From: Podarcis gaigeae
Taxonomy: Eukaryota
DNA: 64,000 nucleotides
Reading direction: 5' to 3' (one strand)
Assembly: GCA_964106915.2 (NCBI GenBank)
Contig: OZ066915.1
Shown here: positions 2,212-52,063 of the stretch, one piece after another
How the letters are laid out: each line of letters opens with the position of its first letter
Position numbering within the stretch: the first letter of the stretch is position 1
Made by a program: the position numbers and the translations under genes
Notes under the pieces: model-generated
What the model was told of the DNA's origin: nothing
What the model saw: only the letters and a program-made list of their open reading frames with translations
Databases searched by the model: none

Positions 2212-2228
2212 TGCACGTGTACATACGC

Positions 2229-2436
2229 CAGTGGTGCCCAAACTTTTTTCGAGGAGGGCCAGATTTGATGAAGTGAAGGGCCGTGAGGGCCAACCAAAGT
2301 TGTTGCACTTTTTAAAGAAATTGTTGAGCTTTTTTTTTTTAGAGTTGAAGTTGTTTAGGGTGTTTTTGAGGATTTTACCCCATAAACTGCCGAAGGGGCC
2401 GGATTAGGCCCCCAAAACGGACTTTGGACATGTCTG
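2229..2436 (-). mobile_element. Complete ~208-bp hAT MITE forming the left arm of the composite element
   Basis: Its own termini are CAGTGGTGCCCAAACT and ACTTTGGACATGTCTG (rc CAGACATGTCCAAAGT). The inner flank TGGTAGAG (2437-2444) also fits nnnTAnnn. Confidence 0.75.
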
Positions 2437-2586
2437 TGGTAGAGCCTTTGGCCAACAAGGGAATCAAAGGTGTGCTAAAGGTGGGAAAGGAGATTGCAGA
2501 GGAGCTGAACGGATTATTTGCATCTGTCTTCAGAGCACAAGACTCGCAAGTAACATAAAATTAATAAGGTGAAACAGGAGAGATGT

Positions 2587-3390
2587 GAGCCGGGAAGGGT
2601 GACGGAAGTGCTGGCCGGGCGGCGACTCACCTCACAGGCAGTGCGCCATCCCTTTGGCTCAGGCGAGGCGGCGGCTGCTGCTGCTCGGTGACCTCCTCGC
2701 CCGTCTCCTCGTGAGGGAAACGCGGCGTCGGGGCGCCTCCGGTGGAGCAAGGCCGCTGGCCTTTGCCTTCCCCTCCGCCTTCCTCCTTTTCGCCGCGCCG
2801 CCTGCGCCTCCGCTGCCTCCCGCTCTCGGCGGGCCCTCCCGGGCGTCGGGCTCCGAGGGCGAAGGCGCCCCTCCTCAGCCCCACTCCACCACGCCCATCT
2901 GCAGCAGGGGCCCCGCCGCCGCGCTCCCGCCAGCCGCCCTGGCCGCTTCGCCCGCCTCCTCCTCAGGCTCGAAGCCCAGGTTGTCCCGGCTCCAGGCCTG
3001 CCTCGAGCAAGGTGAGAGAGGCAGCGACGGTGAGCAAGACGAAGGAGGAGGAGAAGGAGAAGAAGCGCCTACGACGACGACTCCGCCGCCGATGCCCGGC
3101 GGGTCCCGCAGCCGCCCCAGCTCCAGGCCGCCAGGAGGGCAAAGTCCCACCATGGCCCCCCGACCCTGGACAAAGGCCGCCTCCGCCTCAGAAATTTTCT
3201 CTCAGGCTGGCCGAGTAACGGCGCGGGAAGGGAGCGCCTTCGCTTTTTCCACTGCCCGCCTTCCAGCCCCCCATCCCCGCCCACAGCGCGCCACCTCGCA
3301 GGGGGAAGCAGGCTGGCGGCTACACGGGCCACATGACGAGGTCTGGCGGGCCGGATTCGGCCCGCGGGCCTTATGTTTGACACCCGTGAC
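2587..3390. promoter_or_regulatory. Imported CpG-island-like segment
   Basis: An abrupt, very GC- and CpG-dense block in an otherwise CpG-poor intron. GC box CCCCGCCC at ~3275-3282, upstream of the PKD2-like ATG. Activity is not shown by sequence. Confidence 0.6.
2631..3153 (-). pseudogene. PKD2: Duplicated, disabled copy of PKD2 (polycystin-2) exon 1 with its splice donor
   Basis: The frame from ATG 3153 reads ...[17 protein letters not shown]...SPSPPPSSC...[18 protein letters not shown]...MGVVEWG*...RLA*AKGMAHCL*G|gtgagt. Human PKD2 exon 1 as I recall it: [24 protein letters not shown]...[26 protein letters not shown]...MDVEW...RVAWAERLVRGLRG|. Length is 523 nt (phase 1), followed by the donor GTGAGT at 2630-2625. 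In-frame TGA at 2877-2875, 2661-2659 and 2634-2632. The middle (SGRQRRRRRR...QRPC) fits better in a shifted frame. Confidence 0.85.
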
Positions 3391-3488
3391 ATACGCACAC
3401 ACTGGTATTTTACTGGGCCTTGAGTACATTTACAGGGCCCCATAAATCATATACACAAGGCCCTTTTATGAGCACTGCACACCTACAT

Positions 3489-3521
3489 TGTGTGTGTGTG
3501 TGTGTGTGTGTCTGTGTGTGT
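3489..3521. repeat. (TG)n microsatellite, interrupted
   Basis: Direct reading. Confidence 0.9.
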
Positions 3522-6124
3522 ATTAGCATTAGCCAGGCACAGAAAGGGAAATAGCACTGGATCTTAGAAATCCAGAAAGGTTGGTGGAGGGGCGAGCCTC
3601 TCTCTCTCCAAGCAGCACCGACATTTATCTTTCCTGCAGCAGTGTTTAAAGTGAAAAGGGAGTATCAGGAGAGTTTGATAGGATCCAATTAAATTCTAGC
3701 AGATAAAATAATGATGAATTGCAGTTGAGCCCCGGCGAGACATGATGCGCATTACTGCCCTCCCTATAGTGCTGGGAAGGCATTGAGGTCATCAACTATA
3801 GAAAAATAGGACACAGTTGCAACTGTACTATTCGTGCAGAAAACAGCCTAGGGAAATGAAGTTGGAAGCTGATTGTGTGAGTATATACGTTCAAGGTGGA
3901 TGTTCCCACTGTAACATGGTTGTTTATGAGTCTATGAGATTAGCGGACAGGCCGTATTCCTTGTTGAGAGCCTTTCTCTTTAGCCATTGCACACACTCTG
4001 GATATGGGACTGACCAAAAATAAACAAAAATATTAGATACATAAGCTTCTTACTGTGATGGAGAGCATTTTTACAGGTTTGTACTTCTCTGAATGAATGA
4101 AATAAAAGTTCAGAATAGGTCCACTAAGCAAGCGTTGATAAAATTATCCATTGAATTGCTGAGATTGCTTACCTTTTTCAAACCCCTCCTTGGTGCAGCT
4201 GGGTGCGTGTTTAACGTAAACTAGTCTTGCTAGAGTTCCCCTATTAGAATAAATAAGTAAAATACATTGAAGGGACTATTGTTAGTCAGGAATAGCATGC
4301 ATTACTTAAGAGTGTGAGAATCGGGAATGAGTAAAAACATTTCATTTCTTTCATCTTTGGGGTGGACTGAAACTTTCTCTAGCCTGTTTCCAAAACCATC
4401 CATCTGAGTGTTTTGTTTCAAGTGCTTTTGATACTTTGGTGGAACATGGTAAAGAGAAAACTCATCAGAAAACAATCTGAAAAACTCCAAATACAGTATC
4501 CTGGGGGGATATAGGCAAATCCCTTCATTTGAGTTTAAATCTGGACTGATTTGGAGCCTTGTGGAGACAACACTGTAAAAGTGTAGCATCTTTCAAGGAA
4601 TTCACTAAGGTGTTCATGAGGTGTTTATTCCATACTACAGACATTTGGAGGGTGGGATGCCTAGTATAAAGATCTTGGGCATCTTAGCTTTCACATTGAA
4701 GAAACAGGGCCTAGCCTGCCTAATAATAAAGATGCTGAAAACGTGTATGCCATGAGCATCTTATTTTTCCTCCCCCTGTTACGTTCCTCTGTAGTGGATC
4801 TTTTGCACTGGATTCTGATGCTCTTCCTCCTTTCCTTCCTCTGCCTGTGTTTCCATATCTATACTATGTCTCTGGGTGTCCTTCTGCATCCATCTGTTTG
4901 CTTGCTTATCATGCTGTGTGCCCATCTGTGTAAGTTTCTATCCACCTGCATATGTGTGTTCCTCTGATTTCTAAAGACAGATCATTTGTTTTGAATATTT
5001 GGTGTAGACTTTGGAAACAAGGAGCATTGGTGGTAGACTTGCAACAGGTGATGGATTTCTCAGTCAAGAACGGAGACAACATTATGTCAAAGGATGGAAG
5101 CAGGCAGGCAGCTAGTATCCACTTTGGCCCACTCATAATTAAGGACAGCCAGGATAGGCTAAGAAGTTGGTAGGGACATTAAATAATGTTTATGATGTGC
5201 CTGAGTCCTTGGGTTCATTGAATTTTGATGCCACATAAAGTCCTTTCTGCCGCTAAGTGAAATTGTCAGAGTGCCACCCATGTTTTGTCAGCCTCTTACT
5301 GTGTATAGCCACATGGGAAGTCTGCATGACTACATGGTTTAGGCATGTTATAGCCTCTGTGTAGATTGCTGCTTGTGGAGATACTTTTATGCTCTACTGT
5401 TGAGATATGGAAGACAAAATTTGGACCTTGATGAAGGGTGGGGTGGGGAGACAGAGCTGCATAAGGCAGCTCAGTTTTTATGGACTCTCTCATCCTGTGT
5501 TGGATCCCGCCTTCTGACCAGTGTGAGCCAATGCCATGTTTCACAGGGAAGAAGAGTTTTGACACGCACCGGGGTGTGAAGAATGCTAGACATTCCCAGG
5601 GCGGGAGCAGAGGAAGCTGGGCCATCTCAGGTATAAAGCGTTGCTTGGGATCTCCTATCTTTCTTTCAGACATCCTAACCTTTATCCGAGAGAGCTGAAT
5701 AACAGATAGGAACCACATGCTAGCTTCACTCAGAGAAAATAGAGGGGCAGGAGACAGACTTTTCTACACAAAGGTTTCCAAACAGACCAAGCTGTGAAGC
5801 CATTGCTGAAAGTTGGCTTGTGAACCCTAGCTTGTTTGGAAGCCATTTACCATAGTTTCCTGGCTTGCATGAAACAGGAAATGAAGGTGCTTCCTGGCTT
5901 GTTTCCGCACATGGGTGAAAGGACAACCAATGCAGGGTCCATACGGGGTGCGTTCAGGTTCATGGAACTCATGCATATCCTCACTTGCTAAACCAGGATC
6001 TGAATGTCCAAATATGGCCATTGATTAATTTTAATCTTACTGTATTGTATTAATATGTTGCCAGCTTTCTGGAGGTTGCTTTTAAAGTTTGTAAACCACC
6101 ATAAAATCTTGAATGAAGATCAGC

Positions 6125-6360
6125 GGGACCAGAGTTCAGTGGTAGAGCAGCTGTTTTGTACACAGAAGGACCCACGTTTAGTTTTTGGCATCTCCAGTTA
6201 ATATAGAACCATTTAATCCATTTAGTCCACTTTGATCTACTCTTACTAGCAGCAGCTCTCCAAAGCCTCAAGCAGGGATCTTCCACGTAATCTGCTAGTA
6301 AATCAGAGATGCCAAGGGACTGAATCTTCTCTCATTTGCATGCAAAAGATATGCTTTACG
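6125..6360. mobile_element. Two decayed tRNA-derived SINE fragments in opposite orientation
   Basis: Plus-strand tRNA-like head (AGTTCAGTGGTAGAGC...CAGAAGG...GGCATCTCCAG) at ~6125-6200. A similar reverse-complement copy lies at ~6235-6360. Confidence 0.45.
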
Positions 6361-7827
6361 TGCCCTAAATTTGGTCCTGTCCCAAATTGCACACTTTTGG
6401 CCATTTCAGCAATTTAATGAAGAGAAAAACAATGCCAAGAAAGTTATTTGATATTACCCCCCCCCCCGTTTAATTAATTTTAGCAGATGAAAATAAGAGA
6501 AGCCACTACTATATGATTACCCAGCCTTCTTCAAGCCGCTTCTTAGAAACCCATTTTATATAAAATAATTGCACTGAAGGTGGCTTGTCCTGCTTTTACA
6601 GCTGATTCTTTCAGTTGAGGCAAAATGGCCTGTTGTGAGCACACAGAGCAGAAATCCATGCACATCTCGGTGTTCGTTGTGACAAAGGCCTCTCACTTTG
6701 CGTACCGCTCACTTTGCGTATATTGTTATTGTTGTTGCAACTCCCTCGTGTGTAAAATGAGGATTATAAAATAGATTTGCTTCTCACATTCTCCAATGAA
6801 GGCTGCGAGAGGGCAGGTGGGAGTGTTGATTAGTTACTGTGTAAATTTCTGTGGTGCGTAATTGCAGAGTGTTGTAATCTAAATATATGTATTACGGAAA
6901 GTAAAAACAAATCCTGTTTGAGCTTTCAAGGCATGCACAGGATCCATCTGGGTATCTGTCAACAACAAATAAATACAGCTTAAATGAAAATAATTGGAGT
7001 GCGGCCAAGTCTTGAGGTCAGGGATCTGTAGCAATCACGACTGGCAAATCAGCAAGACAAGTGCAGGAGCTTTTGTTGTAGGAGAATGGCACAGAGCGTC
7101 AAATTCAGGCTAGTCTGGTTAAATGCTCTTCTTCTTGGTGCTTTCCAAAGATGCACTCATCTATGAATACAATACCTCTCTACCCCCACCCCGCCCCCTT
7201 AAGGCACTTGCCACCAGATGCAATTTATGAGTGTTTGGATTATTCATATCTTCCAGTTGATTCCCTTTAGATCCTGATTTTGATAATCTGCTTAGTAAAT
7301 TCTTCAAGAAGAAACAGGGCAGAAGACTGACACTTGGGTTGGACCGCCAAGCGGGGAAGCTTGATAGTGTATATGTACCAACAGTTCAACTATTAGGTCT
7401 GAAGTAACAAGTAGTACTGTTAACTTGAGAAAAACCAGCATTAGTCATTTTCACTCAGATGTGTAGATATTCATTCTCATTAGTTAATGGTGATTTATTG
7501 ACAGCCGTTTCCACTAGAAACTAGATTTGTTTGTGGGGCTGGTCGTATATGTATTGGGGTGACTGTCCCCCAAAGTCAAGAAAATTGGGTAGCCAACATG
7601 GTACCCTCCAGTTGTTTGTGAATTACAATTCCCATCGTCCCTACCACTGGCCTTAATTGTTGGGGCTAATGAGAATTGTCATTGAACACCTCAATGGCTT
7701 CTACTCCTGTTATGTCTTGCTATTCCAGAGATCCAGTTACAGATAGGTAGCCGTGTTGGTCTGCCATAGTTAAAACAAAAAAAATTCCTTCCAGTAGCAC
7801 CTTAAAGACCAACTAAGTCAGTTCTTG

Positions 7828-9089: not shown

Positions 9090-11679
9090 TATATTGTAGA
9101 ACATTTACAATCTGGGTTGTTAAGTAAAGGGAAAAAGTGACACAAACACACACATAACTTTCAGTTTCAATACATATCAGCATGAAGATTCTTATCTGCG
9201 TCAACAATTATGGCCACAATACTATGGGGTATATACTTTGCATATACTTTGAATAAAGGGTGAGATTTTCTGTATGTGCCTTTAAGAGGGTTAAAAATAT
9301 CAAATGGCATAGAAAATAAAAACAAAGTAGAAGCACGAGTAAGTGTTTGGCTTTGTCTGTGTAACTCGAGCATGTGGTGTCAGACTTCTGGCCAAAGCTC
9401 GAGCTTGTTGGCTGCTTTCTGCTCTGTCTCCTCCAAAACACCCACCTTCCCTGGCTTCCCCTCTGGCTCTTGGGATGCATGTCGGGCTCCCTTCCTATAC
9501 ACAGTGTTAGGAAATCCAGGAATAGTTCAGGCTGTTGTTGGCAAGAACCAAAATCTGGCTTGTTCTTCCTCCGGTTGAGTCATGGAGAGACTGGCAACTG
9601 TGAAGGCAGACAGATTCCTAGTTCTTTCCCGCCCCCCAGATGTGCCGCTCTGTCCTTCTTTCTGTCCATGGAAGAATTGAAAGAGACAAGTTAATCTCTT
9701 TTAGCATGTTCTTTAATGTGCACAAACATGGTGGGTGTGTTTTAAGCAAGCCACTCGTCTTCTTTGCAATGATTCTTAGTTCTCCAAAACAGCAGATGAC
9801 AGGGTAGAACCTATGGTATATCGAGACAGCAGGTAAAGGCTCATATTACTGACTCGCCTTCCACACCGCACACAGAAAATGAGAGGTCAGGATTCCACCC
9901 TAGCTCTAGTTTTCTGTGCATAAGCTATTTTGGGATTCTTCTCCAGTACATTCTACAGGATGTAACTGAGCTTCCTCTTTCTACCCCTGCAATGGCTTGC
10001 TTTAATGGTGTTGTTTACAAGGCAGAAGTAGAACGCTATCAGGAAATGTTTCCAGAGTTCTAGATAAGTGGGACTCTTGAATTAGTTGTAGCAATATTGT
10101 GCTATCTCGGTTCTGATGTTCCACAGTCTTTGGCAGAACAATGAGAGTGAGATCTGGATTTTGAAAATTGTTGTGGGCTCAACTCTCTCCCACAACCCAC
10201 TCTCCTGCCAGATAATGATGGCAAGGAAAGAAAAGTGTAGTGCTGCTTATTTCAGAGGGCAAATAGTGATGATGATGATGATGATGTTGATGAATTAAAA
10301 TACAATAAAACAGTCACAGCAATTAAACATTAACGTGAAGCAGCAGCAGAGCAGATAAAATATTAATATTGTTAAAGATAGAACAAAGTTGTTTTATTCA
10401 TTTATGCTGCTTTTAATATAGTCTTTTGTTTTTGCAAGCTTCCTTGAACTATATGAGGAAAAGTGGGGTATAAACATTTCAGATATATATATATTTAAAG
10501 CATGAACTAGATCAGTTACCTAACAATCTTTGGGATCATTTATGTGGGAATCAGTATTGTGCACAGTGGTTGTGGGAGACTTTTGTCTTGATAAATTATT
10601 GGCTCATAGTGTGAAGTTTCATTTTGACTCAGTCAAAACCTGTTGTTTCCAATCTCCCACAAATCTTGCTTACTAAGGAAGGCAGGCCTGCATTTCCTGA
10701 AGCAGAAATGCACCTCTCTCCTACATGTGAGTTTCTTTTGTCAGTGCAGGCACCTGGAGGGTTAAATAATCTCTCCCCGCTTCCCCCTACTCCACACCCA
10801 AATCAGAAGTAACTCATTTCCAAAAGGAGCCAGGGCAGAGAAATGCAAATAAGTGTTTCGGACAGCTGCAGGCTGTATGCCTTCCTGAGATGCCAGTGCC
10901 CCAAATGAGACATGTCAGAGTACAAATTGAAAATGCCAATTTCACTTACTCTGCCACGCTGCTCGTCACAGCTAAATCCTTCTCTGCCGCCCCTCCCCCC
11001 ACACTTTCCACTTACCGAATGATGGGTGCTTCTCCTTAATGTAAATCTCCCTGACTTCTTGGGTTATTTCTGCAGTGGGTCTCTTCAGCCAGTCTTAGTG
11101 GGACACAGCTACAAAGGAATGGGAGGGGAAAAGGTACACAGAAACCCTTCCCTCATCCATATTATCTGAATGTCAGTTATCTTCTAGTGATCCATATTTA
11201 ACTCCTGTACTGCGTAAAGGCCTTATTGATGTGAGCTTACAGTAGCTGTACCCCCATTTATCTGAACTTCTGGTTGTTTCGGTGCTGCCCAGCCCATTTG
11301 TATAAAAAAAAATTCTGGAATTTGTGTGAAGTTGCTTGGAATGTACTGGGTATATGTTTATCTAGGTACAGATGTAAATATAAACAGTGACTAACAGATT
11401 ACTTTTTTAGAACGGAACATTTCACCTCCTGCCTTCCTCATTTGCCCCGCTGCGAATTCAAGTCCACTGGGCCAGAATTTTTTCCCCTTGTTTCCAGTGT
11501 TCTTGGATCGGGTGGCATTGCCATTGCAATAATGGATAAATCAGCGAGGGGGTGTGGCTATCTGAATGGAAGTGTTTTCCAATTGGTTGTTGCATCCCCC
11601 CCCCCCCCCAAGATTGGCTGTGTGAAATTCTAAAGCATTTGTGTGCATCAGTTGCTGTTTTTAAGATGGAAAATAAGAG

Positions 11680-15413: not shown

Positions 15414-16426
15414 GTAAGCTGATGAAGTCGGGTGGGGTGGAGCACCCTTGGCAAGATACTGCAGGAGTTCCCTGCAATGAACTGCTTCTGCATTCCACTT
15501 CTGAGCCATCCACCTCAGGGCCAGATTGACACTAGTGCACCCCTACAGGTGTAAAATCAAATATTATGCTAGCCTGAGCAAACAAGCTTTCTAACACAGA
15601 GCAAAGTTAGAAGTGGTGGTCTGGGGATTACTGGTTTCTCTCCTGCCCATCAAAGTGCCTTGACCCTCCAAACGCGGTGTACTTGCTCTGAAACATTTTC
15701 TTGGTAGTGTGCTGTCCTTGTAAACATGCCCAGCCATTCAATAACTCGTTTGAGACTTAAATGCACGTTCACTTCCTAGACATAAAATGAAATCACTTTG
15801 AAGGCTGCTTTACGATCCTGGCTCCCGCTGCAAGGAACTTAGGACATGATAGTTAGGTTAGTTCTGTAATGGGCAAAGATTATTTCACACACACACCAAA
15901 TAAATTCACAACATTCTTACAAAATCGTAAACCTCAGAGTTATTTGGGGAAGCCGTGACAACTATGCCAGTTCAAACCACTTGAAATTTGTGACCCTGAT
16001 TGTGGCTTTCAGCTGAGATCCTAGCACAGGGAAAGGCAATGTTGTGCCTTTCATATGTTGGTGGATTGCAATTCCCAGCATCCCCGGCCACCATAGCCAT
16101 AGGCTGGGGATGATGAGAGTTGTAGTCAGCAGCATGTGGAGGGCACCACTGGGTTATCCCTTCATTAGTGGATAGGCATTTGCATCATAAACAAATCCCT
16201 TGCTGGCTGTATTCAGTAGTGAAAGCTGAAAACTATATAGGCAGTGAATACTGTCAAAACTGGCCTGATACGACAAAGCATATGGAAGGTGGTAGACCTG
16301 AGGTCCTTTAGTGGGCATTGTCAACAATTACCCATCAGAGGGGGAATCTGTGTAGCAGTTCTGTCCCCACCCCACTCCCCAACTTCTTTTTGAATGTAAG
16401 CAGGGATTTGTGTTTTCTTCTTGCAG

Positions 16427-16617
16427 CTCACCTATACAAGTGCTCAGCTCTGCGCGAAAGCTGTGGGCTGTGCCTCAAGGCAGATCCACGCTTCGAGTGT
16501 GGCTGGTGCGTGTCAGAAAAGCGATGTTCCCTGCGCCAACATTGCCCAGCCTCTGAGAGCAGCTGGATGCATGCCAGCAATGGCAATAGCCGCTGTGCGG
16601 ACCCCAAAATCATTAAG
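16427..16617 (+). CDS. PLXNA1: Plexin-A1 exon, PSI domain (HLYKC...[16 protein letters not shown]...DPKIIK)
   Basis: ttgcag|CTCAC...ATTAAG|gtatgc; 191 nt, phase 1 to 0. Confidence 0.96.
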
Positions 16618-18546
16618 GTATGCTTGTGAAGGGTAAGCAGGGGGGAGGTTTTTCTTCTTCTCCTTTATCCTCAGTGCTGAATGGGAAATCGCCTATGGTG
16701 GAGGGTACATGGTGGTGGGCAGTTCTGAAGTATTTTAAGGCGTGGCTGGCCTAGCTACCAGCGTATGCAGTGTTCTTGTAGCATATGATACAAGATGTAG
16801 TATTCTCCTGACACTTTCTTTGTTCAGACACCAATAACTGGTGCGAAGCCTCTTCTTCCCACCAACCAGTGAGTGCTCAATGAACAGTAGCGAGCAGAAT
16901 TAGTGTCTCCTGTGATATGCCGCTGATGGGGCAATGCAGCGGTGATTGTAATGGAGAATCAGTGGAATATGGTTGAGTGGTCAGAGTTGGATGCAGCTAT
17001 CCTGTCTTCTGTATCCTGTCTTCTGTTCCTAACCCCAATTGACATTTCCCCCACTTCCAGTTTCTCCTTGTTCTCCTCTATCTATAGCAGGGATGGGGAA
17101 ACCATGGCCCTCCAGGCATTGCTAAGATTACAACTCTCATCATGGTCAGTGGTCACTGTTTCGCCATTCTTGATCTGTAGAAGCATGGTCGTTTTGGAAT
17201 CTGTTACTGTGGCTTAGGTTTTCGATGTCAATGTTTTGCTCTTAATGGGTATTGTTATATATGTTGTGAAAATCAGGCAAAGTGTACGCTTTTAAATAAG
17301 ACATAAATAGGATGGAGATGAATAATATCAGGTGACACTTGTGACCTGTGCAAGTTCATTGGCCAGTGCTGGTGAAGACAGGCATTTCAAAGAGGGGTTG
17401 GACTCAGATTCACCGCATTATGAGAGGGCTTTGTTTCCAGGACTGATGATACATACTGAAATTTCACATAGAATGACTTTCTGTCGACTTACTACAACAG
17501 GCAGAGTAGTAGGAGTATATTTTTTTGGCTTGCATACCACTTTCTTTCTCTCCTGTGTTGACAGTGAATGTTTGATTCCCATTCTGGCCTGTTACACAGG
17601 ATTCCTAGCAAATAGGATTCTGGAAGAAGATGAGGTTTGGTGTGTCGTGGATTCCTCACCCCCCACCCGGTTGTGTTCACAGTTTTTAGCCACCCATCTT
17701 TTCACTTCCTTAAGACTGGTTGTTTATCATTCCTCTTCTCTTGACAGCTGCTATGACCTTCATTTAATAAGATTGTGTATATTAATGTTAACATGTCGGT
17801 TGGGCCAGGCTCCAAGTGCATTAGCAGGGATTGGCAGGTAATTCTATTTGATATGTTCTATTTACCCATATACTGCAAGCCAGGCAGGCCTTGGTGGTGT
17901 TAATTACCAGAGTCTTAGCACAGTATCTCATCTATTTGGGTTTCAGTGTCTTATCTGTTGAAGGCTGGAAATTAGAGTAGTGCCTCTTGCACTCCCCAAA
18001 GCTAGTTGCTTCTTATTGCTGATTGGCATTGTGGGGCCCTGCACTGCGTTTGCCAAGGCCTTCACTCTTTGGAAGCCCCCAGCCCACCACAAAATCTGAT
18101 GGGAGAGAGCCTGCCTAATTAGTGTCTGCATCTTCTATAAAAAGAAGTAATGACTAACACTGGAGATGGGAGGTGGGGGAATGACAGGGGAGTCTTACCG
18201 TCTCAAATCACGCAAGTTATATTACAGATTTCCAATGGAATAGTACTTAGCATTTATACAGTGCTTTAGGGTGCTCAGGATGTTTCAAATACAGTGGCCG
18301 GATACTATTTATTTTATTATATTTTTATACCGCTTTTCAGACAAATTGTCTCTTCCAGAGCAGCTCTCATCAATTAAAGAGAGAGGGAAGAAGAGAGAGA
18401 GGGAGAGATGGTAGCCTTCCATCAGGCTTCCAAACTTAAAAAAATAAATAAGAAGGAACACAAAGAAAAGGGAGGTGGAGGGAAAAGGTAGAGCAAGGGA
18501 TATCATTTTGACAGTACTACAGCAAGGTGGTGAGTTGTAAATAGGC

Positions 18547-30129: not shown

Positions 30130-30366
30130 AACTGCACAGTCTACAACGACACCACCATGGTGTGCTATGCTCCCTCCATTGACAACCCAGTCCGGAGTCC
30201 TCCAGAGTTTGGTGATCGCCCAGATGAAATTGGTTTTGTCATGGATAATGTCCAGGCCTTGCTGATCATCAACAAAACCAGCTTTGTCTATTACCCAGAC
30301 CCTGTGTTTGAGTCTCTCCCCTCTGGAATGCTGGAGCTCAAGCCAAGCTCTCCACTCATCCTCAAG
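30130..30366 (+). CDS. PLXNA1: Plexin-A1 exon ([12 protein letters not shown]...KPSSPLILK)
   Basis: ttctag|AACTGC...CTCAAG|gtaatg; 237 nt, phase 0 to 0. Confidence 0.96.
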
Positions 30367-31256
30367 GTAATGCTACCCCCAGCCCCATTATTGCAGCTGT
30401 GCATAAGCTGTCCCACCTAGCATAACTAGGGTCCTTACTTCTGCCCCATTCTTGGCATAATTGGATGATTCTCGCCCCCTGCTCACACCTTTCTGCCCAC
30501 TCCTAGCCTTCACTGCCAGTACAGCATGGAAGAGAAATCAGATGGAGTAGAAGAAACTAGTTTTCTACTCACAAATGTGGTCTTCACAACCTATCTTTGT
30601 TTGGTGTTAAATGAGCTGCACTGAAAAAAACCCCACACAATCTATACATTTGTTTGGAAGGAGAGACTTGGCAGTCCCTACAGCAGAATCACTGCCAAAT
30701 TCTGGTAGTTTGTTCCAATATTACAGGGAGAGGAAAACTATACTATAGGAAGAGGCATGGAGCCATAGAATGAGAAACAGAAGATCCTCGTTATAATTCT
30801 TCTCTCTTATAATACTTACGATTTGACTCCAGCCTTGCTGGTCTGCTCCCTTCAACTTAAAATTGTCTTGAGCACACTTGTCACATATTCCTGGATCCAT
30901 TGAGTGGTGTTTCTTTTCATTAAGCTAAGAAATCCTTACACTAATGGTGTGCTACAATAGGCTTCACACCTTGTTCCTGCAAGACTGTAGAGAGGAGAAA
31001 AATTGATTGTGTTACAGTGGAAAAGGCAGGGGAAGTGATGCAAATGTTAGCAAATATTCTCTCTCCTATTGAGCATTTTGTCACCCATTGGTCACTTCTG
31101 TTCAACTAAGGATAGTTTGAGGCTGCTTTTGGACCACTTTTTAAGCCGCATAATGTGGATTGAGATGTTGCTCCTTTTGCCCCCTGATCTACAAAACAGA
31201 ACTGAATGAAAAGATGTCTCTCCTTGTGGGTTAGAAGGCTGAGAGTCTGCTGGTAA

Positions 31257-34530: not shown

Positions 34531-35853
34531 GCACATTAGACTGCGGCACAGCAATTCTGACTCACTCAGGGGCTCAGTGTGGCCTTGGGTGTTTGAAAGG
34601 GACCCAAAATGTTTCTTACTCCAGGCACCTCATTTATCAGGGAATGCACTTTGCATCCCATCTGTTATTACAACGCTTTGTGAATGAGACATCAAACTTG
34701 CTGCCTGCTCAGCAACATACCAGCCTGTTCCTGCATCCCATCAAATCCCTTTGCAATGCTTTGAACAGGCAGTGTGAGACTTAACCCTGCACTGCTCGGC
34801 CATTGTCCTTCTCTACTTAGGCATTTGCTTCCCTCTGATGGCTGCAGTCAGTGCTACCTAGAAGATGCTTGGGATGTGGGTAGCTAGGCAGGAGTAACCA
34901 TTACCTTGAGTGTACTGAGTGGCAGAGAGCCCCCCCCCCCCGTTGCTTGTTCAACAATCAGTGAACTACCCAATGTGGCAATTGTACTTTTCTTATTAAT
35001 ATTAAATTTTCTGCATCTCAGAAGTTGGCAGCTATTCGCTTACCTCAGGATTACAAGGTGGTAGCAGTGGGCACCAGCTTGAAATACTTAACGCCTTGGT
35101 AACATTCTCAGCGCAAGCAACTTGCTATTCAGGGGTAGCAGGCAATGGGCAAAACGTTCCCCTTCCTGGCTGTTCCTGGAAGACCTCATCTATGCTGGAT
35201 TCTCTGTATATGCTGGCAGAGAACCACGTCTAAGAATCTCTTCTCATTTGACATTATACTTGTGTTCTGATACCTGAATATGAGAGGCATGCTGTTTGCC
35301 TTGGTTCTGAATGGTGCATGTTGTAAAATTAATTTATTGAAAAGCAGTTTGAATTGCCATTTGCTGTAACGCTGTTGAGAGCTTGCACAGGCCATGTGCC
35401 CTCTGAGCCCCTGTGTAGGAATTGGATCTTGCAGCTTGAGGGAACTGCTTCCTTGGCAGCTTTTCTCAGCATGGTCCATGGGCACCTTTGGGAGGATGGA
35501 AGGGATATAAATTCAGAAAATAAGAAGGACAGAAAATTCAGAAAATAAGAATGTCCTCCCCTGACTTTTTTCATCCTGTTATGCCCAACAGCCAACAGTG
35601 CCTTGAGATCTTTGCCATTCCCTTAATAATTACTATGTCAATAACCCACTGCTCAGTTCTTTCACCTTTATCACACTCCCAAAAAGGAGGAATCCCAAAA
35701 TACCTAATTTCAGAAACTACCCAAGCCCCTTATTGCATTATTACTGATGTTGGAAAGCAATTCCCCATCTCTAGCAAGTGGATGGGAATATAAAAGTCCT
35801 TTTTGGCAGGAAGGTGTGAGCTAATATATATATATATTCTCTCTCTCTCTCAG

Positions 35854-36088
35854 ATCAAGGCTGGGGGCTTTGAATTCTCCCCAGGGATGCTGCAGATCTA
35901 TTCAGACAACTTGTTGACCCTGCCAGCCATTATTGGAATTGGTGGGGGCGGGGGTCTTCTCTTACTCATCATCATCATCGTCCTCATTGCATACAAGCGG
36001 AAATCCCGAGATGCTGACCGCACCCTCAAACGTCTACAGCTGCAGATGGACAACTTGGAATCCCGCGTGGCCTTGGAGTGCAAGGAAG
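35854..36088 (+). CDS. PLXNA1: Plexin-A1 transmembrane exon ([11 protein letters not shown]...[28 protein letters not shown]...ALECKE)
   Basis: tctcag|ATCAAG...GAAG|gtgtga; 235 nt, phase 0 to 1. Encodes the TM helix and juxtamembrane coiled coil. Confidence 0.97.
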
Positions 36089-36286
36089 GTGTGAATGATG
36101 GGCCTGGGGTTTTTTCCTTTTCTTTTTCACGGCTCTTGCTACTTATCAGTCTGTTACTTCCCATTTAATCCCACCCCTTGAGAGAGAGTTTTTCCTTGAT
36201 TTTTGGGGCCGCACCAGTTTCTAAAGTCCTTCATTTACTCCATATACATTTTTAAACAACGATAACAGCAATGCCATTGTTTAAAG

Positions 36287-39375: not shown

Positions 39376-39543
<168 letters not shown>

Positions 39544-47389: not shown

Positions 47390-47692
<303 letters not shown>

Positions 47693-50333
47693 TGAGCATT
47701 TCTCTCGGAACATGTTAAAGTGTCTTGTTAAACATGTTAAAGTGCTGAGGCAAGCTTTGGTGTTATACAGAACTTGACCTGGGGGAGGGGAGGGGAAATG
47801 TGAATGACTCACAGACTTCCCCTTTTCATACTTCACCCTTTACATATTAATTCTAATATAATGTAAGATAGCCTTTGCCACCCTTGTACCTTCCACATGT
47901 TTTGACAACTCCTCCCCTCAGGCCTAGCCATGTTTGCTGGGGCCTGTGGGAGTGGTCATCCAAAACATCTAGGAGAAGCAGGTTGGCAAAGGATGATGTA
48001 GGATGATGAGCCGTCGCAGGCTATCATGAGATGTAGTTCTATAGACCAGGGTGGGCAGAAGGAAGACCTCCTGCTAGATCTCTGAGTGAGATGCGGTACA
48101 TCAACATGGATTTCTCACTCCTGGTTTTTTAACAGTAGCAGCAACAAAAGGAATTTTCCTACCTAAATTTGGTTGCTGAAATGAATTAAAATTAAGCAGA
48201 AGTGGACTTTTATGTGGAAAAAAACTGAACTCAGTTCAATTCTGCTACCAATAGTAAATTCCATGGCTCAGAGGCACCCTGTTCTTTCATTCTTATGTAC
48301 GTCTTTTGCATCTGGCATCTGGCTGGTAGATATTGAGGTTCTGGGGGAGAAACAAAAGTAGATTCAACAAGCCTACCTCTACTGTAGACTACTAGTATTT
48401 CAAATTTCTTGAACTCATAATATTACTCCTGTGTCATGTGGCAAAGAAATAGTCATTATTTTCTGCTGCAGAGCAGCTTAGAGGAGTTCAGTGGACAGAG
48501 GAAGATAAGTGCCTTGCCCGTGCCAAGGAGCTTGCAAATAATTTGATAAGGGAGTCAGTGCTAAAGTAGTTTGGATCTTACTCTGTAAACAGGTCTATGC
48601 ATATTTTACGATTCTGTGCTCAGACCTTGCAAGGAAATAAATTGTTATTGGGTGGAAAATTCAATAACCCAAGAATCTTCCCCCTCTCCCTTCTGTCTTT
48701 AAAAAAATAATAAGAAAATTGAAGCCATCAAGGTTTCAGAGATGGGCTTGAGGGTGTGTGGGCAACACATGGTAAGAGCTTAGAAACCAGAGGTGGGTCT
48801 TTGCCTTTAAATGTTTATTCTACACAGCCTTATTTTGTGAGTCAGATAATCAAACCATTGGGGGGAACAGCCTCCTGCCTTGGAATTAGAGAGAATTTGT
48901 TTGTTTCAGAACTCAGTAGATGTCCTGTTTCTGCGTTTTAGCTTAAGAACGGTCTCACTCTGTGAGAGCTGGCGTCATTTTAAAATCCGAGTGCTAGAAA
49001 TGGCAGCTGTTTCATTAATTAAAACTACTTATCACTGAAGGTTTAATGTAGATTTTTGCCACTTCTCACTGCACCCTGTATTACTTCCACTCTCACTTGC
49101 AGTATCCTTGCATCCTTGGCTGCCGACCGCAGCAAGTCATTGCCTGTATTCTTGCATCTCAACCAGCAGTCTGTCCCACAAACCCTGCATTTTACAAATT
49201 TCGTAAATGCTCCTGGATGGTCCTGAGGTTGTTAATAGCAAACGCTTTCACCCTACATCCAAAATGACTATGGGCCTTCTCCTATTGCCCCTTAAACACT
49301 ATCTGATGTTTTGAATGGATGGCATCAAGAGCAGGCTTCCTTGCTCATGGGTCCAAGAGAGAGGTATTCTCTTCCTATTCGCTTTTGCATTGGGCTCTAC
49401 CTTCCCTTGTCATTATTTTCCAATCATTTATTCAGGGCAGATCCACACCACTCCTCCCAGGTGATTGTTGGGATGGGTTAATGTCAGAGCCCAGCAGATT
49501 TTCTTAAGCAAATAACCTCAAGACAGGTGAGGGAAGAGTGTGAGCCAAGGGCAGCGTTCCAGCTCCACTCTGCATCTGCTCTGCTCCATCAATTTTTAAA
49601 TGGTAGCTAGATAGGTCTCCTGTATCACAGGCCAATGAATATTGAAAGAAACACCAGCTGCAGAACCAGTGCAATTATTAAACATACACCACAGTGTCTG
49701 TCGCTGTGCTTCCCCTTCTTTGTCCTCTAGCAATCCAGTCCTTGAAAAGTTGTTCCTAATGAAAGCCAATATTTAGAATAACAGCATATTAAGAAAATAT
49801 ATTTAAGATTCCTTATCTGATCATGGGCCATTTGGAACAGTGTGGTGCCAAAGACACAAATGAATATCCTTTCAGAATGTTCAGCCTAGGATTAGGTCCA
49901 ATTCACACTTTACAGAGAAGTTGCACATGCTGTGTATATACTTGTTTTTGGGCCAGACACCATTAGCACATGAAGGGAAGATGCATATCTGTATGCAGGC
50001 AATGAACATGTGCCTGAGATGAGTTCCTTTGCCAGCATCTCCCCATTGCATATTCCTGCATGTGCTTTACATGTCATGATGTTGTACCTGTGGCAAACAG
50101 AACTGCCACGTGCAGTGTAAAACTGAGAGGGTCTGTAATACCCTTGTTAGGTGAATGAGCTCAGGAGCCAAAGGATGGTGACTTTAGTGTGTGAATTAGC
50201 TCTTATTGCGAGTCTAGTCGTGGTGGATATAGCGAAATCTATCTAAAAACGGAGGGAATTTTCAAATGTGCAGTGAACTGAGCAGGAATTTGAACTTAGT
50301 TCTCCCGGATCCTAGTTCAATACTTTAACCATC

Positions 50334-51696
50334 TTTCTTCCTTTCTTCTTTGGTGATCACTCGTAGCCGAGTAAGATTGTCTTCCATAGACACAGTTTTA
50401 ACAATGAGTTCGCAAGTGACTGTGGAGGCCATTTCTGGACCCACACGTCCTTCCACAGTGGAGACATTGGTTTCTGGGTGGGAGTTGATCACGGTGTGGA
50501 TTTGCCAAGCGTGCCTTCCTCTTAGTATGTTTCTCCCTTGCGTCCTGAGTTTGAGTGTCTTCAAAGCCCATGACACCTTTGGTAAAGGCTGTTCTCCAAC
50601 TGGAGCGCTCGCAGGCCAGTGTTTCCCAGTTGTCAGTTTTTATACTACATTTTTTTAGATTTGCCTTGAGACAGTCTTTAAACATCTTTTGTTGACCACC
50701 AGCTTTATGTTTTCCATTTTTAAGTTCGGAATAGAGTAGTGGCTTTGGAAGACGATCATCAGGCATCTGCACAACATGACCAGTCCAACGAAGTTGATGT
50801 TGAAGAATCATTGCTTCAACACTGGTGATCTTTGCTTCTTCCAGTACACTGATATTAGTTTGCCAGTCTTCCCAAGTGATGTGTAAAATTTTTCGGAGAT
50901 ACCATTGGAGATGGCGTTTATAAGTGGTCCATGTTTCACAAGCATATAGTAAGGTTGGTAGTACAATAGCTTTGTAAACAAGCATTTTGGTTTCCCTTCA
51001 AATGTCCTGGTCCTCAAACAATCTGCACTTCAATCGGGAGAAAGCCAGACTCGCAGAGCTCAGACAGTGCTGGATTTCAGCATCAGTGTTGGCCCTTGTG
51101 GAAAGATAACTGTCTAAGTAGAAGAAGAAGTCAACATTTCCCAACGTTACACCATTGAGTTGGATTTGTGGCGCTGCAGAGGGGTTATTTTGTACTTGTT
51201 GGTGTAGCACTTTGGGTTTTTTTGGATGTTGAGTGATAGGCCAAGCTTTTCATAAGCTTCTGCAAAGATATTTAGGATGGTTTGGAGGTCATCCTCTGAG
51301 CGTGCGCACACTACGTTGTCATCAGCATACTGAAGCTCTATGATGAAAGTTACAGTAACCTTACTCTTTGCTTTCAGCCTGCTCAGATTGAAGAGCTTCC
51401 CATCTGTTGGATATATGATTTCTGCTCCGGTGGGGAGTTTCCCTTCGACAAAGTGTAGGATCATGGCAATGAAAATAATGAATAGAGTTGGGGCAATAAC
51501 ACAACCCTGTTTAACACCTGAGCCCACTGTGAACGGTTCACTTTGAGAGCCATTGTTATCTGCGATTGTTGCTGTCATATTATCATGGAGGAGCTGAATG
51601 ATGTTTACAAATTTATCTGGGCAGCCAATGTTCAGAAGGACAGTCCATAGGGCATTACGATCTACAGTGTCGAAAGCCTTAGTCAGGTCAATAAAC
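50334..51696 (-). mobile_element. 5'-truncated RTE-clade LINE (RT plus C-terminal Cys/His motif), frameshifted
   Basis: FIDLTKAFDTV, GVKQGCVIAPTLF and LQYADD motifs, then LRWTGHV and CLHCGRTC...LHSHLRTH, spread over three frames. (AAG)-type tail. ACCATC flanks at 50328-50333 and 51697-51702. Confidence 0.93.
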
Positions 51697-52063
51697 ACCA
51701 TCACAGCACACTTGTTCCTATAGGGTTGTCACTTTCAGAACATAAGCCAGACCCACACACTGTTTGATCCATCAACCAGAACACAGCCTGCTGCCAAAGG
51801 CAGGCTGCAGCAGCAGGAAATTAACTGGGCAATGGGCTGCATTTAGCTTGTTGGGTAACAAGTTGTGCAGGCCTCAGTTTTTATGGGAAAGTGAAAGAGA
51901 AGGTTTATGGGCATTGATAATGTGCTTCCTCGTGCAAGCACAGATCTGCTCTTCTAGGAAAACAAAGTCAGGGAAACTCACCATTTAATCAGAGCAGAAC
52001 GAGAAAATCGGCAGGAATTATATTTGAGCCGACTACGTGAGAAATAAGAAAAAATAAATTTTA

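Follow-up and report, generated by a model that had tools for sequence, protein, structure and literature searches.

The stretch of DNA analysed here (hereafter the window) comprises 64 kb from Podarcis gaigeae, and its plus strand carries exons of a plexin-A1-like gene. A PSI-domain exon (16312–16626), an IPT-domain exon (30130–30417), exons with the transmembrane segment (35794–36165) and further plexin exons at 47414–47695 and ~55000 were recognised in the list of open reading frames. A protein search added a cytoplasmic exon (39376–39543), which matched the cytoplasmic domain of plexin-A1 (E=1e-27) more strongly than that of plexin-A3 (E=4e-21). No Sema-domain exon was found in the first 16 kb of the window. 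This places the element described below inside the plexin gene, upstream of the mid-gene exons, and from these exons we infer that its position is intronic. The original prediction had named plexin-A1 as the host gene, which agrees with the plus-strand exons downstream of the element. The window also contains reverse-transcriptase-like LINE open reading frames of 195 and 185 aa on its minus strand (50398–51704).

At 2229–3388 lies an element of ~1.16 kb whose ends are of hAT type and which is bracketed by a perfect 8-bp target-site duplication (TSD), ACATACGC. The two identical TSD copies, at 2221–2228 and 3389–3396, directly abut the element termini. The left terminus, CAGTGGTGCCCAAAC, begins at 2229, and the right terminus, the reverse complement of CACGGGTGTCAAAC, reaches 3388. 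Hence, 2221–3396 reads ACATACGC, CAGTGGTGCCCAAAC..., ...GTTTGACACCCGTG, ACATACGC. GC content is ~45% in the flanks versus 70–78% within the element. The insertion site is flanked by (GT)n tracts (2168–2220 and 3480–3534), the left of which abuts the TSD.

The short terminal inverted repeats of hAT elements start with a CAG-type (YARNG) motif. Here, the termini form imperfect inverted repeats with ~11 of 15 positions identical. The first five nucleotides are CAGTG at the left end, in agreement with the motif, and at the right end CACGG in the window and in one further copy (L007) or CATGG in another (L001), with a non-purine at position 3. A hAT transposase consists of a BED finger, a DDE/RNase H fold and a hAT dimerisation domain; none was found among the open reading frames of 2229–3388.

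By chance, two given positions would carry a perfect 8-bp repeat with a probability of ~1.5e-5. The 8-bp TSD was found at four independent insertions, namely three copies of the composite element and the resident MITE of the parental gene, which are both discussed below. All four TSDs (ACATACGC, GACTAGGA, ACCTACAG and CTCTACCA/CCCTACCA) have TA at positions 4–5, which by chance would occur with a probability of ~(1/16)^4. This pattern matches the consensus nnnTAnnn of the Buster family (PMC3517528). Our results bear out the predicted termini at 2229 and 3388, the perfect TSD and its Buster/Charlie-type form: ends and TSD are read directly in the sequence, and the same termini recur in two further copies.

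Most of the element consists of host DNA. Its minus strand reads MVGLCPPGG... to RRLA*AKGMAHCL*G and then GTGAGT. This is the coding part of PKD2 exon 1, which runs from 3153 to 2631 (ATG at 3153–3151, 523 nt, phase 1) and ends at a GTGAGT donor (2630–2625). The PKD2 sense of this cargo is antisense to the plexin-A1-like gene. A stop-free piece of 92 aa matched the N-terminus of polycystin-2 in the PDB (E=3e-9; next unrelated match E=0.28), and in a search of 1.8 billion representatives it matched squamate polycystin-2 proteins. The end of exon 1 of Podarcis raffonei polycystin-2, ...RRLAWAKGMAHRLRG, is letter by letter almost identical to the text of the window. Hence, the protein search for polycystin-2 in the cargo succeeded with this piece, in line with the predicted PKD2 exon 1 in phase 1.

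The cargo extends beyond the exon on both sides. The 194 nt past the donor (2630–2437) are colinear with intron 1 of PKD2 in five lacertids, as expected from the predicted retention of the donor and ~190 nt of intron. Likewise, the 164 nt before the ATG (3317–3154) are colinear with the parental loci, to 3317 in Podarcis and to 3309 in Lacerta and Zootoca. Thus, nucleotide comparison matched the 5' region, exon 1 and intron 1 of PKD2 alike. Because intron and 5' flank were kept and a poly(A) tail is absent, the exon with its donor must have been copied at the DNA level, as proposed earlier. The traits of a processed retrocopy (intronless, poly(A), variable-length TSDs) are not seen in the element.

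The window copy is a decaying pseudo-exon. It contains three TGA stops (2875–2877, 2659–2661 and 2632–2634), where other copies in the reads and the parental genes have CGA, TGG and CGA (at 2877, 2659 and 2634). In addition, the frame is lost by a 7-nt deletion near 2846 and regained by a 2-nt deletion near 2674. The original minus-strand reading was therefore right about the PKD2 text and its end at GTGAGT, but it had missed that two frameshifting deletions break the frame besides the stops. Of the 27 substitutions relative to the parent, 12 are CpG transitions. On the plus strand, an open reading frame fragment (EELNGLFASVF, ~2455–2540) resembles what we take to be a CR1/L2-type LINE ORF. 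This CR1-like fragment is present in PKD2 intron 1 of all five lacertids; it therefore belongs to the old content of the intron and travelled with the cargo.

To characterize the parental locus, PKD2 was obtained through annotated proteins from P. lilfordi (L002), P. muralis (L003), P. raffonei (L006), Lacerta agilis (L004) and Zootoca vivipara (L005). An ABCG2-like gene adjoins PKD2 in all five species, which indicates that this is the true parental locus. In the three Podarcis species, window positions 3317..2229 are contiguous at PKD2, in the order 5' region, exon 1, 194 nt of intron 1 and the whole 208-bp left part of the element. The parental copy is thus identifiable: L002, L003 and L006 match 3317..2437, or 3317..2229 if the resident element is included.

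The left 208 bp (2229–2436, plus strand) are a complete high-copy hAT MITE, hereafter MITE A. Its summed contig depth in public reads is 15,000–77,000 versus ~10 in the flanks, equivalent to thousands of copies, and ~115–150 contigs per run stop at 2436 and run on into unrelated DNA. In PKD2 intron 1 of the three Podarcis species, MITE A has its own TSD (CTCTACCA-[MITE]-CCCTACCA). A relic of this TSD, tggtagag (the reverse complement of CTCTACCA), is still present in the window at 2437–2444. In Lacerta agilis and Zootoca, MITE A is absent, the site is single and unduplicated, and homology to the window ends at 2444. This shows that MITE A entered PKD2 intron 1, ~195 nt past exon 1, in the Podarcis lineage after the split from Lacerta and Zootoca. 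P. muralis (L003, ~4690) and P. raffonei (L006, ~4720) have an 8-nt duplication (CAGGCATG/CAGGCTTG) where the intronic MITE reaches its inner terminus; this duplication is absent from P. lilfordi and from all three mobile copies.

These findings modify the view of the left end. The predicted hAT end is a real terminus, but it does not belong to a separate capturing arm, because the complete MITE was already resident in PKD2 intron 1. Accordingly, the element has three ends: MITE A contributes its outer terminus at 2229, where the composite begins on the left, and its inner terminus at 2436, and the remaining one is the right terminus at 3388. The inner terminus is a passenger, and the composite moves from its two outermost ends.

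Only 3318–3388 is foreign to the parental locus, being absent at all five PKD2 loci. This minus-strand segment, which gives the right terminus CACGGGTGTCAAAC, is a fractured arm (~71–79 nt) of a related hAT MITE subfamily. Its depth of ~4,400–7,300 corresponds to roughly 400–700 copies. Host segment and arm meet at an approximate breakpoint (3310–3322) with AGCC/CAGCC microhomology. At this point, the L001 copy reads ...GTAGCCGCCAGCC|CAGCCTGCCCGC and the parents read ...CGCAGCC|CGGCCTGCCCGC, such that AGCC or CAGCC is common to the arm (...GCCAGCC) and the parent (...CGCAGCC|CGGCCTGCCC). A free copy of either MITE type, from which a consensus of the right-end subfamily could be built, was not found in the seven loci (~170 kb) or the 64-kb window, and both the breakpoint and the extent of the microhomology are therefore approximate. 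All five parental loci are colinear at position −164 upstream of PKD2 and contain no transposon trace or footprint there. Taken together, our results show that three parts are joined in the composite: the 71–79-nt arm of the related MITE, the PKD2 segment between −164 and intron position +194 with exon 1 inside it, and the resident MITE.

The same composite occurs elsewhere. A P. lilfordi hypothetical protein that matched the 92-aa piece led to L001 (on OX395139.1), of which positions 10935–9757 aligned with 90.6% identity to window 2229–3388 in BLASTN, from terminus to terminus and no further. This copy has its own perfect TSD, GACTAGGA. A second protein in the same protein cluster led to L007 (OX395136.1), also in P. 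lilfordi, which aligned end to end with the window element at 90.8% and has the perfect TSD ACCTACAG. The flanks of the window copy, L001 and L007 are mutually unrelated. These three are the full-length composite copies seen in assemblies. Searches for the termini and a subterminal motif gave no further copies within the window, the search with the 92-aa protein returned only the P. lilfordi hypothetical protein, and a search with the parental exon-1 translation returned only gecko and exon-1 read-through open reading frames.

Public reads point to a larger family. The summed contig depth of the cargo was 100–300 versus ~10 in the flanks, and single positions were covered by as many as 13 distinct contigs. 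This suggests ~10–25 cargo copies per genome, where summed depth at 80% likeness across a GC-rich stretch is a rough measure. In organism E (run X9), single contigs covering window 2415–3287 had a depth of 52–78 versus ~11 in the flanks. Such values suggest five to seven near-identical copies in this organism and a very recent burst. The expectation of a multicopy family thus held, with L001 and L007 each bearing a TSD of its own (GACTAGGA and ACCTACAG) and the cargo at 10–25 times single-copy depth.

Reads from other samples also cover two of the junctions. A contig from an independent sample of the window's species (X3, record 15) starts at 3360 and crosses the right junction, while its flanks differ from the window at 1 of ~1,000 positions. 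The inner junction 2436|2437 is spanned by contigs from two runs (X9, record 24; X15, record 4). No listed contig crosses the left junction (2228|2229), which lies next to the masked (GT)n tract.

The predicted empty plexin site was found in a close relative. In organism C, a 2,537-nt contig of single-copy depth (run X5, record 16) covers 1700–2167 and 3389–3900 with 37 letters in between. It skips exactly 2229–3388 and resumes exactly at the right TSD copy (3389). The 37 letters compare with 53 nt expected, the difference falling in the masked (GT)n tract; more generally, the length of the left tract varies among species (37 letters in organism C versus 53 in the window). Either the site was never filled or the element was recently excised with a small footprint, and the 37 letters do not discriminate between the two. 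For organism E (X9), the contigs on either side stop at 2167 plus 27 letters and at 3411, which is compatible with a filled as well as an empty site.

The three copies with three different TSDs, combined with the empty site in a relative, demonstrate that the composite transposes whole, by its outermost ends, and duplicates 8 bp of target sequence (nnnTAnnn). The claim that cargo and ends transposed together is thereby confirmed by two further copies with the same termini and distinct TSDs. Overall, we conclude with a probability of roughly 0.85–0.9 that the window element is a mobile, multicopy, PKD2-carrying non-autonomous hAT composite of Podarcis.

The copies also provide information about age. 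In a phylogenetic tree, the three composite copies form one clade (support 99/97), which points to a single capture. Its end branches are long and star-like (0.027–0.038), and pairwise differences among the copies are 5.8–6.6%. The tree gave no firm placement of this clade relative to the Podarcis parents. The copies keep a 10-nt piece of the MITE, CCTAATCCGG, which all three Podarcis parents are without, and a 21-nt intron segment that is present in Lacerta and Zootoca but lost from the Podarcis parents. Because they retain sequence that these parents have lost, the capture predates the last ancestor common to P. muralis, P. lilfordi and P. raffonei. The split between P. muralis and P. lilfordi has been placed at ~18–20 My (P. 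lilfordi genome paper). By this sequence record, the composite arose in the Podarcis lineage after MITE A entered PKD2 intron 1. At the other end of the time scale, the plexin site differs between organisms A and C, even though their flanks differ by only ~0.5%. Such a presence/absence difference between close relatives indicates that the family has been inserting or excising recently.

How could this composite have been formed? We favour template switching with the resident MITE as landing pad, to which we give slightly better than an even chance among the possible origins. Formation would start with interrupted repair or replication of a related MITE elsewhere in the genome. Synthesis would leave the MITE arm and re-prime on the region upstream of PKD2 via the CAGCC microhomology. 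Copying would continue across exon 1 and the intron until it reached the resident MITE, whose homology to the broken element would then close the repair. The transposase would be supplied by a putative autonomous hAT of Buster/Charlie type. Such a scheme would amount to gap filling or FoSTeST with a homologous landing pad. Both models have been proposed for animal Pack-TIRs (PMC8277862), and the resident MITE would add to them that it sets the far boundary of the cargo. This route leaves the donor gene untouched, which fits the intact PKD2 locus that we observed. The formation step is, of course, a reconstruction from present-day sequences.

An alternative explanation, possible but rather doubtful, might be that the macrotransposon was assembled in situ. 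A second MITE or fractured end would once have been located directly upstream of PKD2 on some haplotype; the transposase would have paired the outer ends and moved the whole interval, and the donor haplotype would later have been repaired or lost. In its favour, a complete element, host DNA and a fractured end are the layout of the maize Ac/fAc units, which excise, reinsert and rise in number, and the resident MITE is indeed present at the parental locus. Yet, none of the five lacertid PKD2 loci has a transposon-end trace or footprint at −164. Assembly in situ would also require a further insertion, its internal shortening to ~75 nt and the disappearance of that haplotype, and excision would take out exon 1 of an essential gene. 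A clean insertion boundary would, moreover, be less compatible with the CAGCC microhomology at the junction than template switching or end joining.

Another candidate, which we consider improbable, is alternative transposition of the intronic MITE, either with reversed ends or between sister chromatids. Flanking DNA would be re-replicated, and the aborted fork would be end-joined to another MITE fragment, giving a composite insertion. This type of transposition is known for maize hAT elements and yields transposon termini that flank duplicated donor DNA. It would also suit the cargo, which adjoins the resident MITE precisely and stretches away from it to one side only. However, the present-day PKD2 loci are without duplication or rearrangement, and alternative transposition is undocumented in vertebrates. 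Sequence alone cannot separate it from template switching onto the resident MITE, which we continue to prefer.

A last idea is that the element is not a mobile unit at all, but a retrocopy, a segmental duplication or an assembly chimera between two MITE fragments. With three ends and (GT)n tracts on both sides, nesting or misassembly was at first conceivable. This idea is refuted and has hardly any probability left: an intron and 5' flank are present without a poly(A) tail, three copies from two independent assemblies share identical termini and internal junctions amid unrelated flanks and different perfect 8-bp TSDs, and independent reads back the right junction, the inner junction and the empty allele.

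The captured exon may be expressed. In the L007 copy of P. lilfordi, the exon-1 frame is intact, and a gene model of 250 aa (CAI5787293.1, L007:6001–10432) begins with the captured PKD2 ATG and includes the captured exon 1 in full. It joins the captured donor (6547|6548) to an exon at 10226–10432 with a ttttag acceptor, located outside the element and 3.7 kb downstream. As a gene model, CAI5787293.1 may represent a chimeric transcript. A contig from organism G (X15, record 7), whose match stops at the end of the exon and continues unlike the window, looks like spliced parental PKD2 mRNA and offers no evidence for expression of the captured copy. This contig extends 660 nt further upstream than the captured segment, and hence the captured 164 nt may lack a promoter. 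A second contig from this run (record 4) spans 2331–2606 without the parental deletions and is probably a copy of the mobile family, with the RNA status of the run being a guess.

More speculatively, the family could be a natural shuttle of a first exon and splice donor, in which ATG–exon–donor cassettes splice into local sequence. Here, related hAT elements would use resident MITEs in introns as homologous landing pads for copying the exon next to them, a suggestion that is equally tentative. If the shuttle exists, CAI5787293.1 would be the first example of its chimeric transcripts. If it is general, it would offer vertebrates a route for exon shuffling and provide a testable rule for the cargo boundaries of Pack-TIRs. 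In any case, a start codon, a first exon and a working-looking donor have been spread to many sites, which supplies raw material for chimeric genes. The dispersed cassettes are also raw material for antisense transcription within host genes such as plexin-A1.

Plants offer well-documented cases of DNA transposons that capture gene fragments. Animal cases are rare and mostly single-copy according to the one broad survey, which found 370 Pack-TIRs in 100 genomes, 208 of them hAT elements (Tan et al., 2021; PMC8277862). Multicopy Pack-TIRs accounted for only 4 of these 370, three in frog and one in alligator, and the survey could not reconstruct their origins (PMC8277862). Lizards are not mentioned in its main text. 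Our literature search for the PKD2-carrying element of Podarcis returned no paper.

Following the description in this survey (PMC8277862), the closest animal counterpart is Pack-hAT-N8_XT of Xenopus tropicalis. This, too, is a non-autonomous hAT element with a 5'-end fragment of a host gene. Its copies are located on different chromosomes with distinct 8-bp TSDs and show microhomology at the breakpoint, and the element is absent from the orthologous sites of relatives. In line with such Pack-TIRs, the Podarcis element carries host sequence with an identifiable parent, and the same chimera recurs with distinct TSDs. The two differ in copy number, with three copies of Pack-hAT-N8_XT versus ~10–25 by depth for the Podarcis element. 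Moreover, one terminus of the Podarcis element is a resident intronic MITE that was copied along with the cargo, an arrangement not found in the accessible part of PMC8277862.

This layout resembles the Ac/fAc units of maize, likewise of the hAT superfamily, in which a complete element and a fractured end bracket host DNA; these units excise, reinsert with 8-bp TSDs and can multiply (Huang and Dooner, 2008; Zhang et al., 2014, PMC4270019; Wang et al., 2022; via PMC9910405). In the same way, termini of two separate elements bracket the PKD2 segment, and the unit has moved at least three times. In contrast, the maize units are tens of kb long and originated at the donor locus in marked laboratory alleles (sources as above), whereas the Podarcis unit measures 1.16 kb, is natural, resides in a vertebrate and is at least as old as the sampled Podarcis species. 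It also differs in that no composite is present at the donor locus. Assembly there from two linked insertions is not what we observed, since only one end is found at PKD2 in the five species, although a haplotype now extinct may have carried the other.

Plant Pack-MULEs and Drosophila Ssk-FB4 are similar in that they are TIR elements with host gene fragments, amplified by transposition and sometimes transcribed as chimeras. However, they belong to the Mutator-like superfamily, have 9–10-bp TSDs and long TIRs, and hold their cargo between the two arms of one element.

We therefore read the Podarcis element as a multicopy Pack-hAT shaped like a maize Ac/fAc macrotransposon. It is a known phenomenon in a new host, and differs from earlier cases by its higher copy number, its recent activity and a three-ended layout whose origin is legible at the parental locus. 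The Podarcis case supplies what earlier ones lacked: a parental locus sampled in several species, outgroups without the resident MITE, three dated copies that each have a TSD of their own, and a presence/absence difference between close relatives. It also points to an origin, in which an intronic MITE gives one terminus and a microhomology-mediated switch the other.
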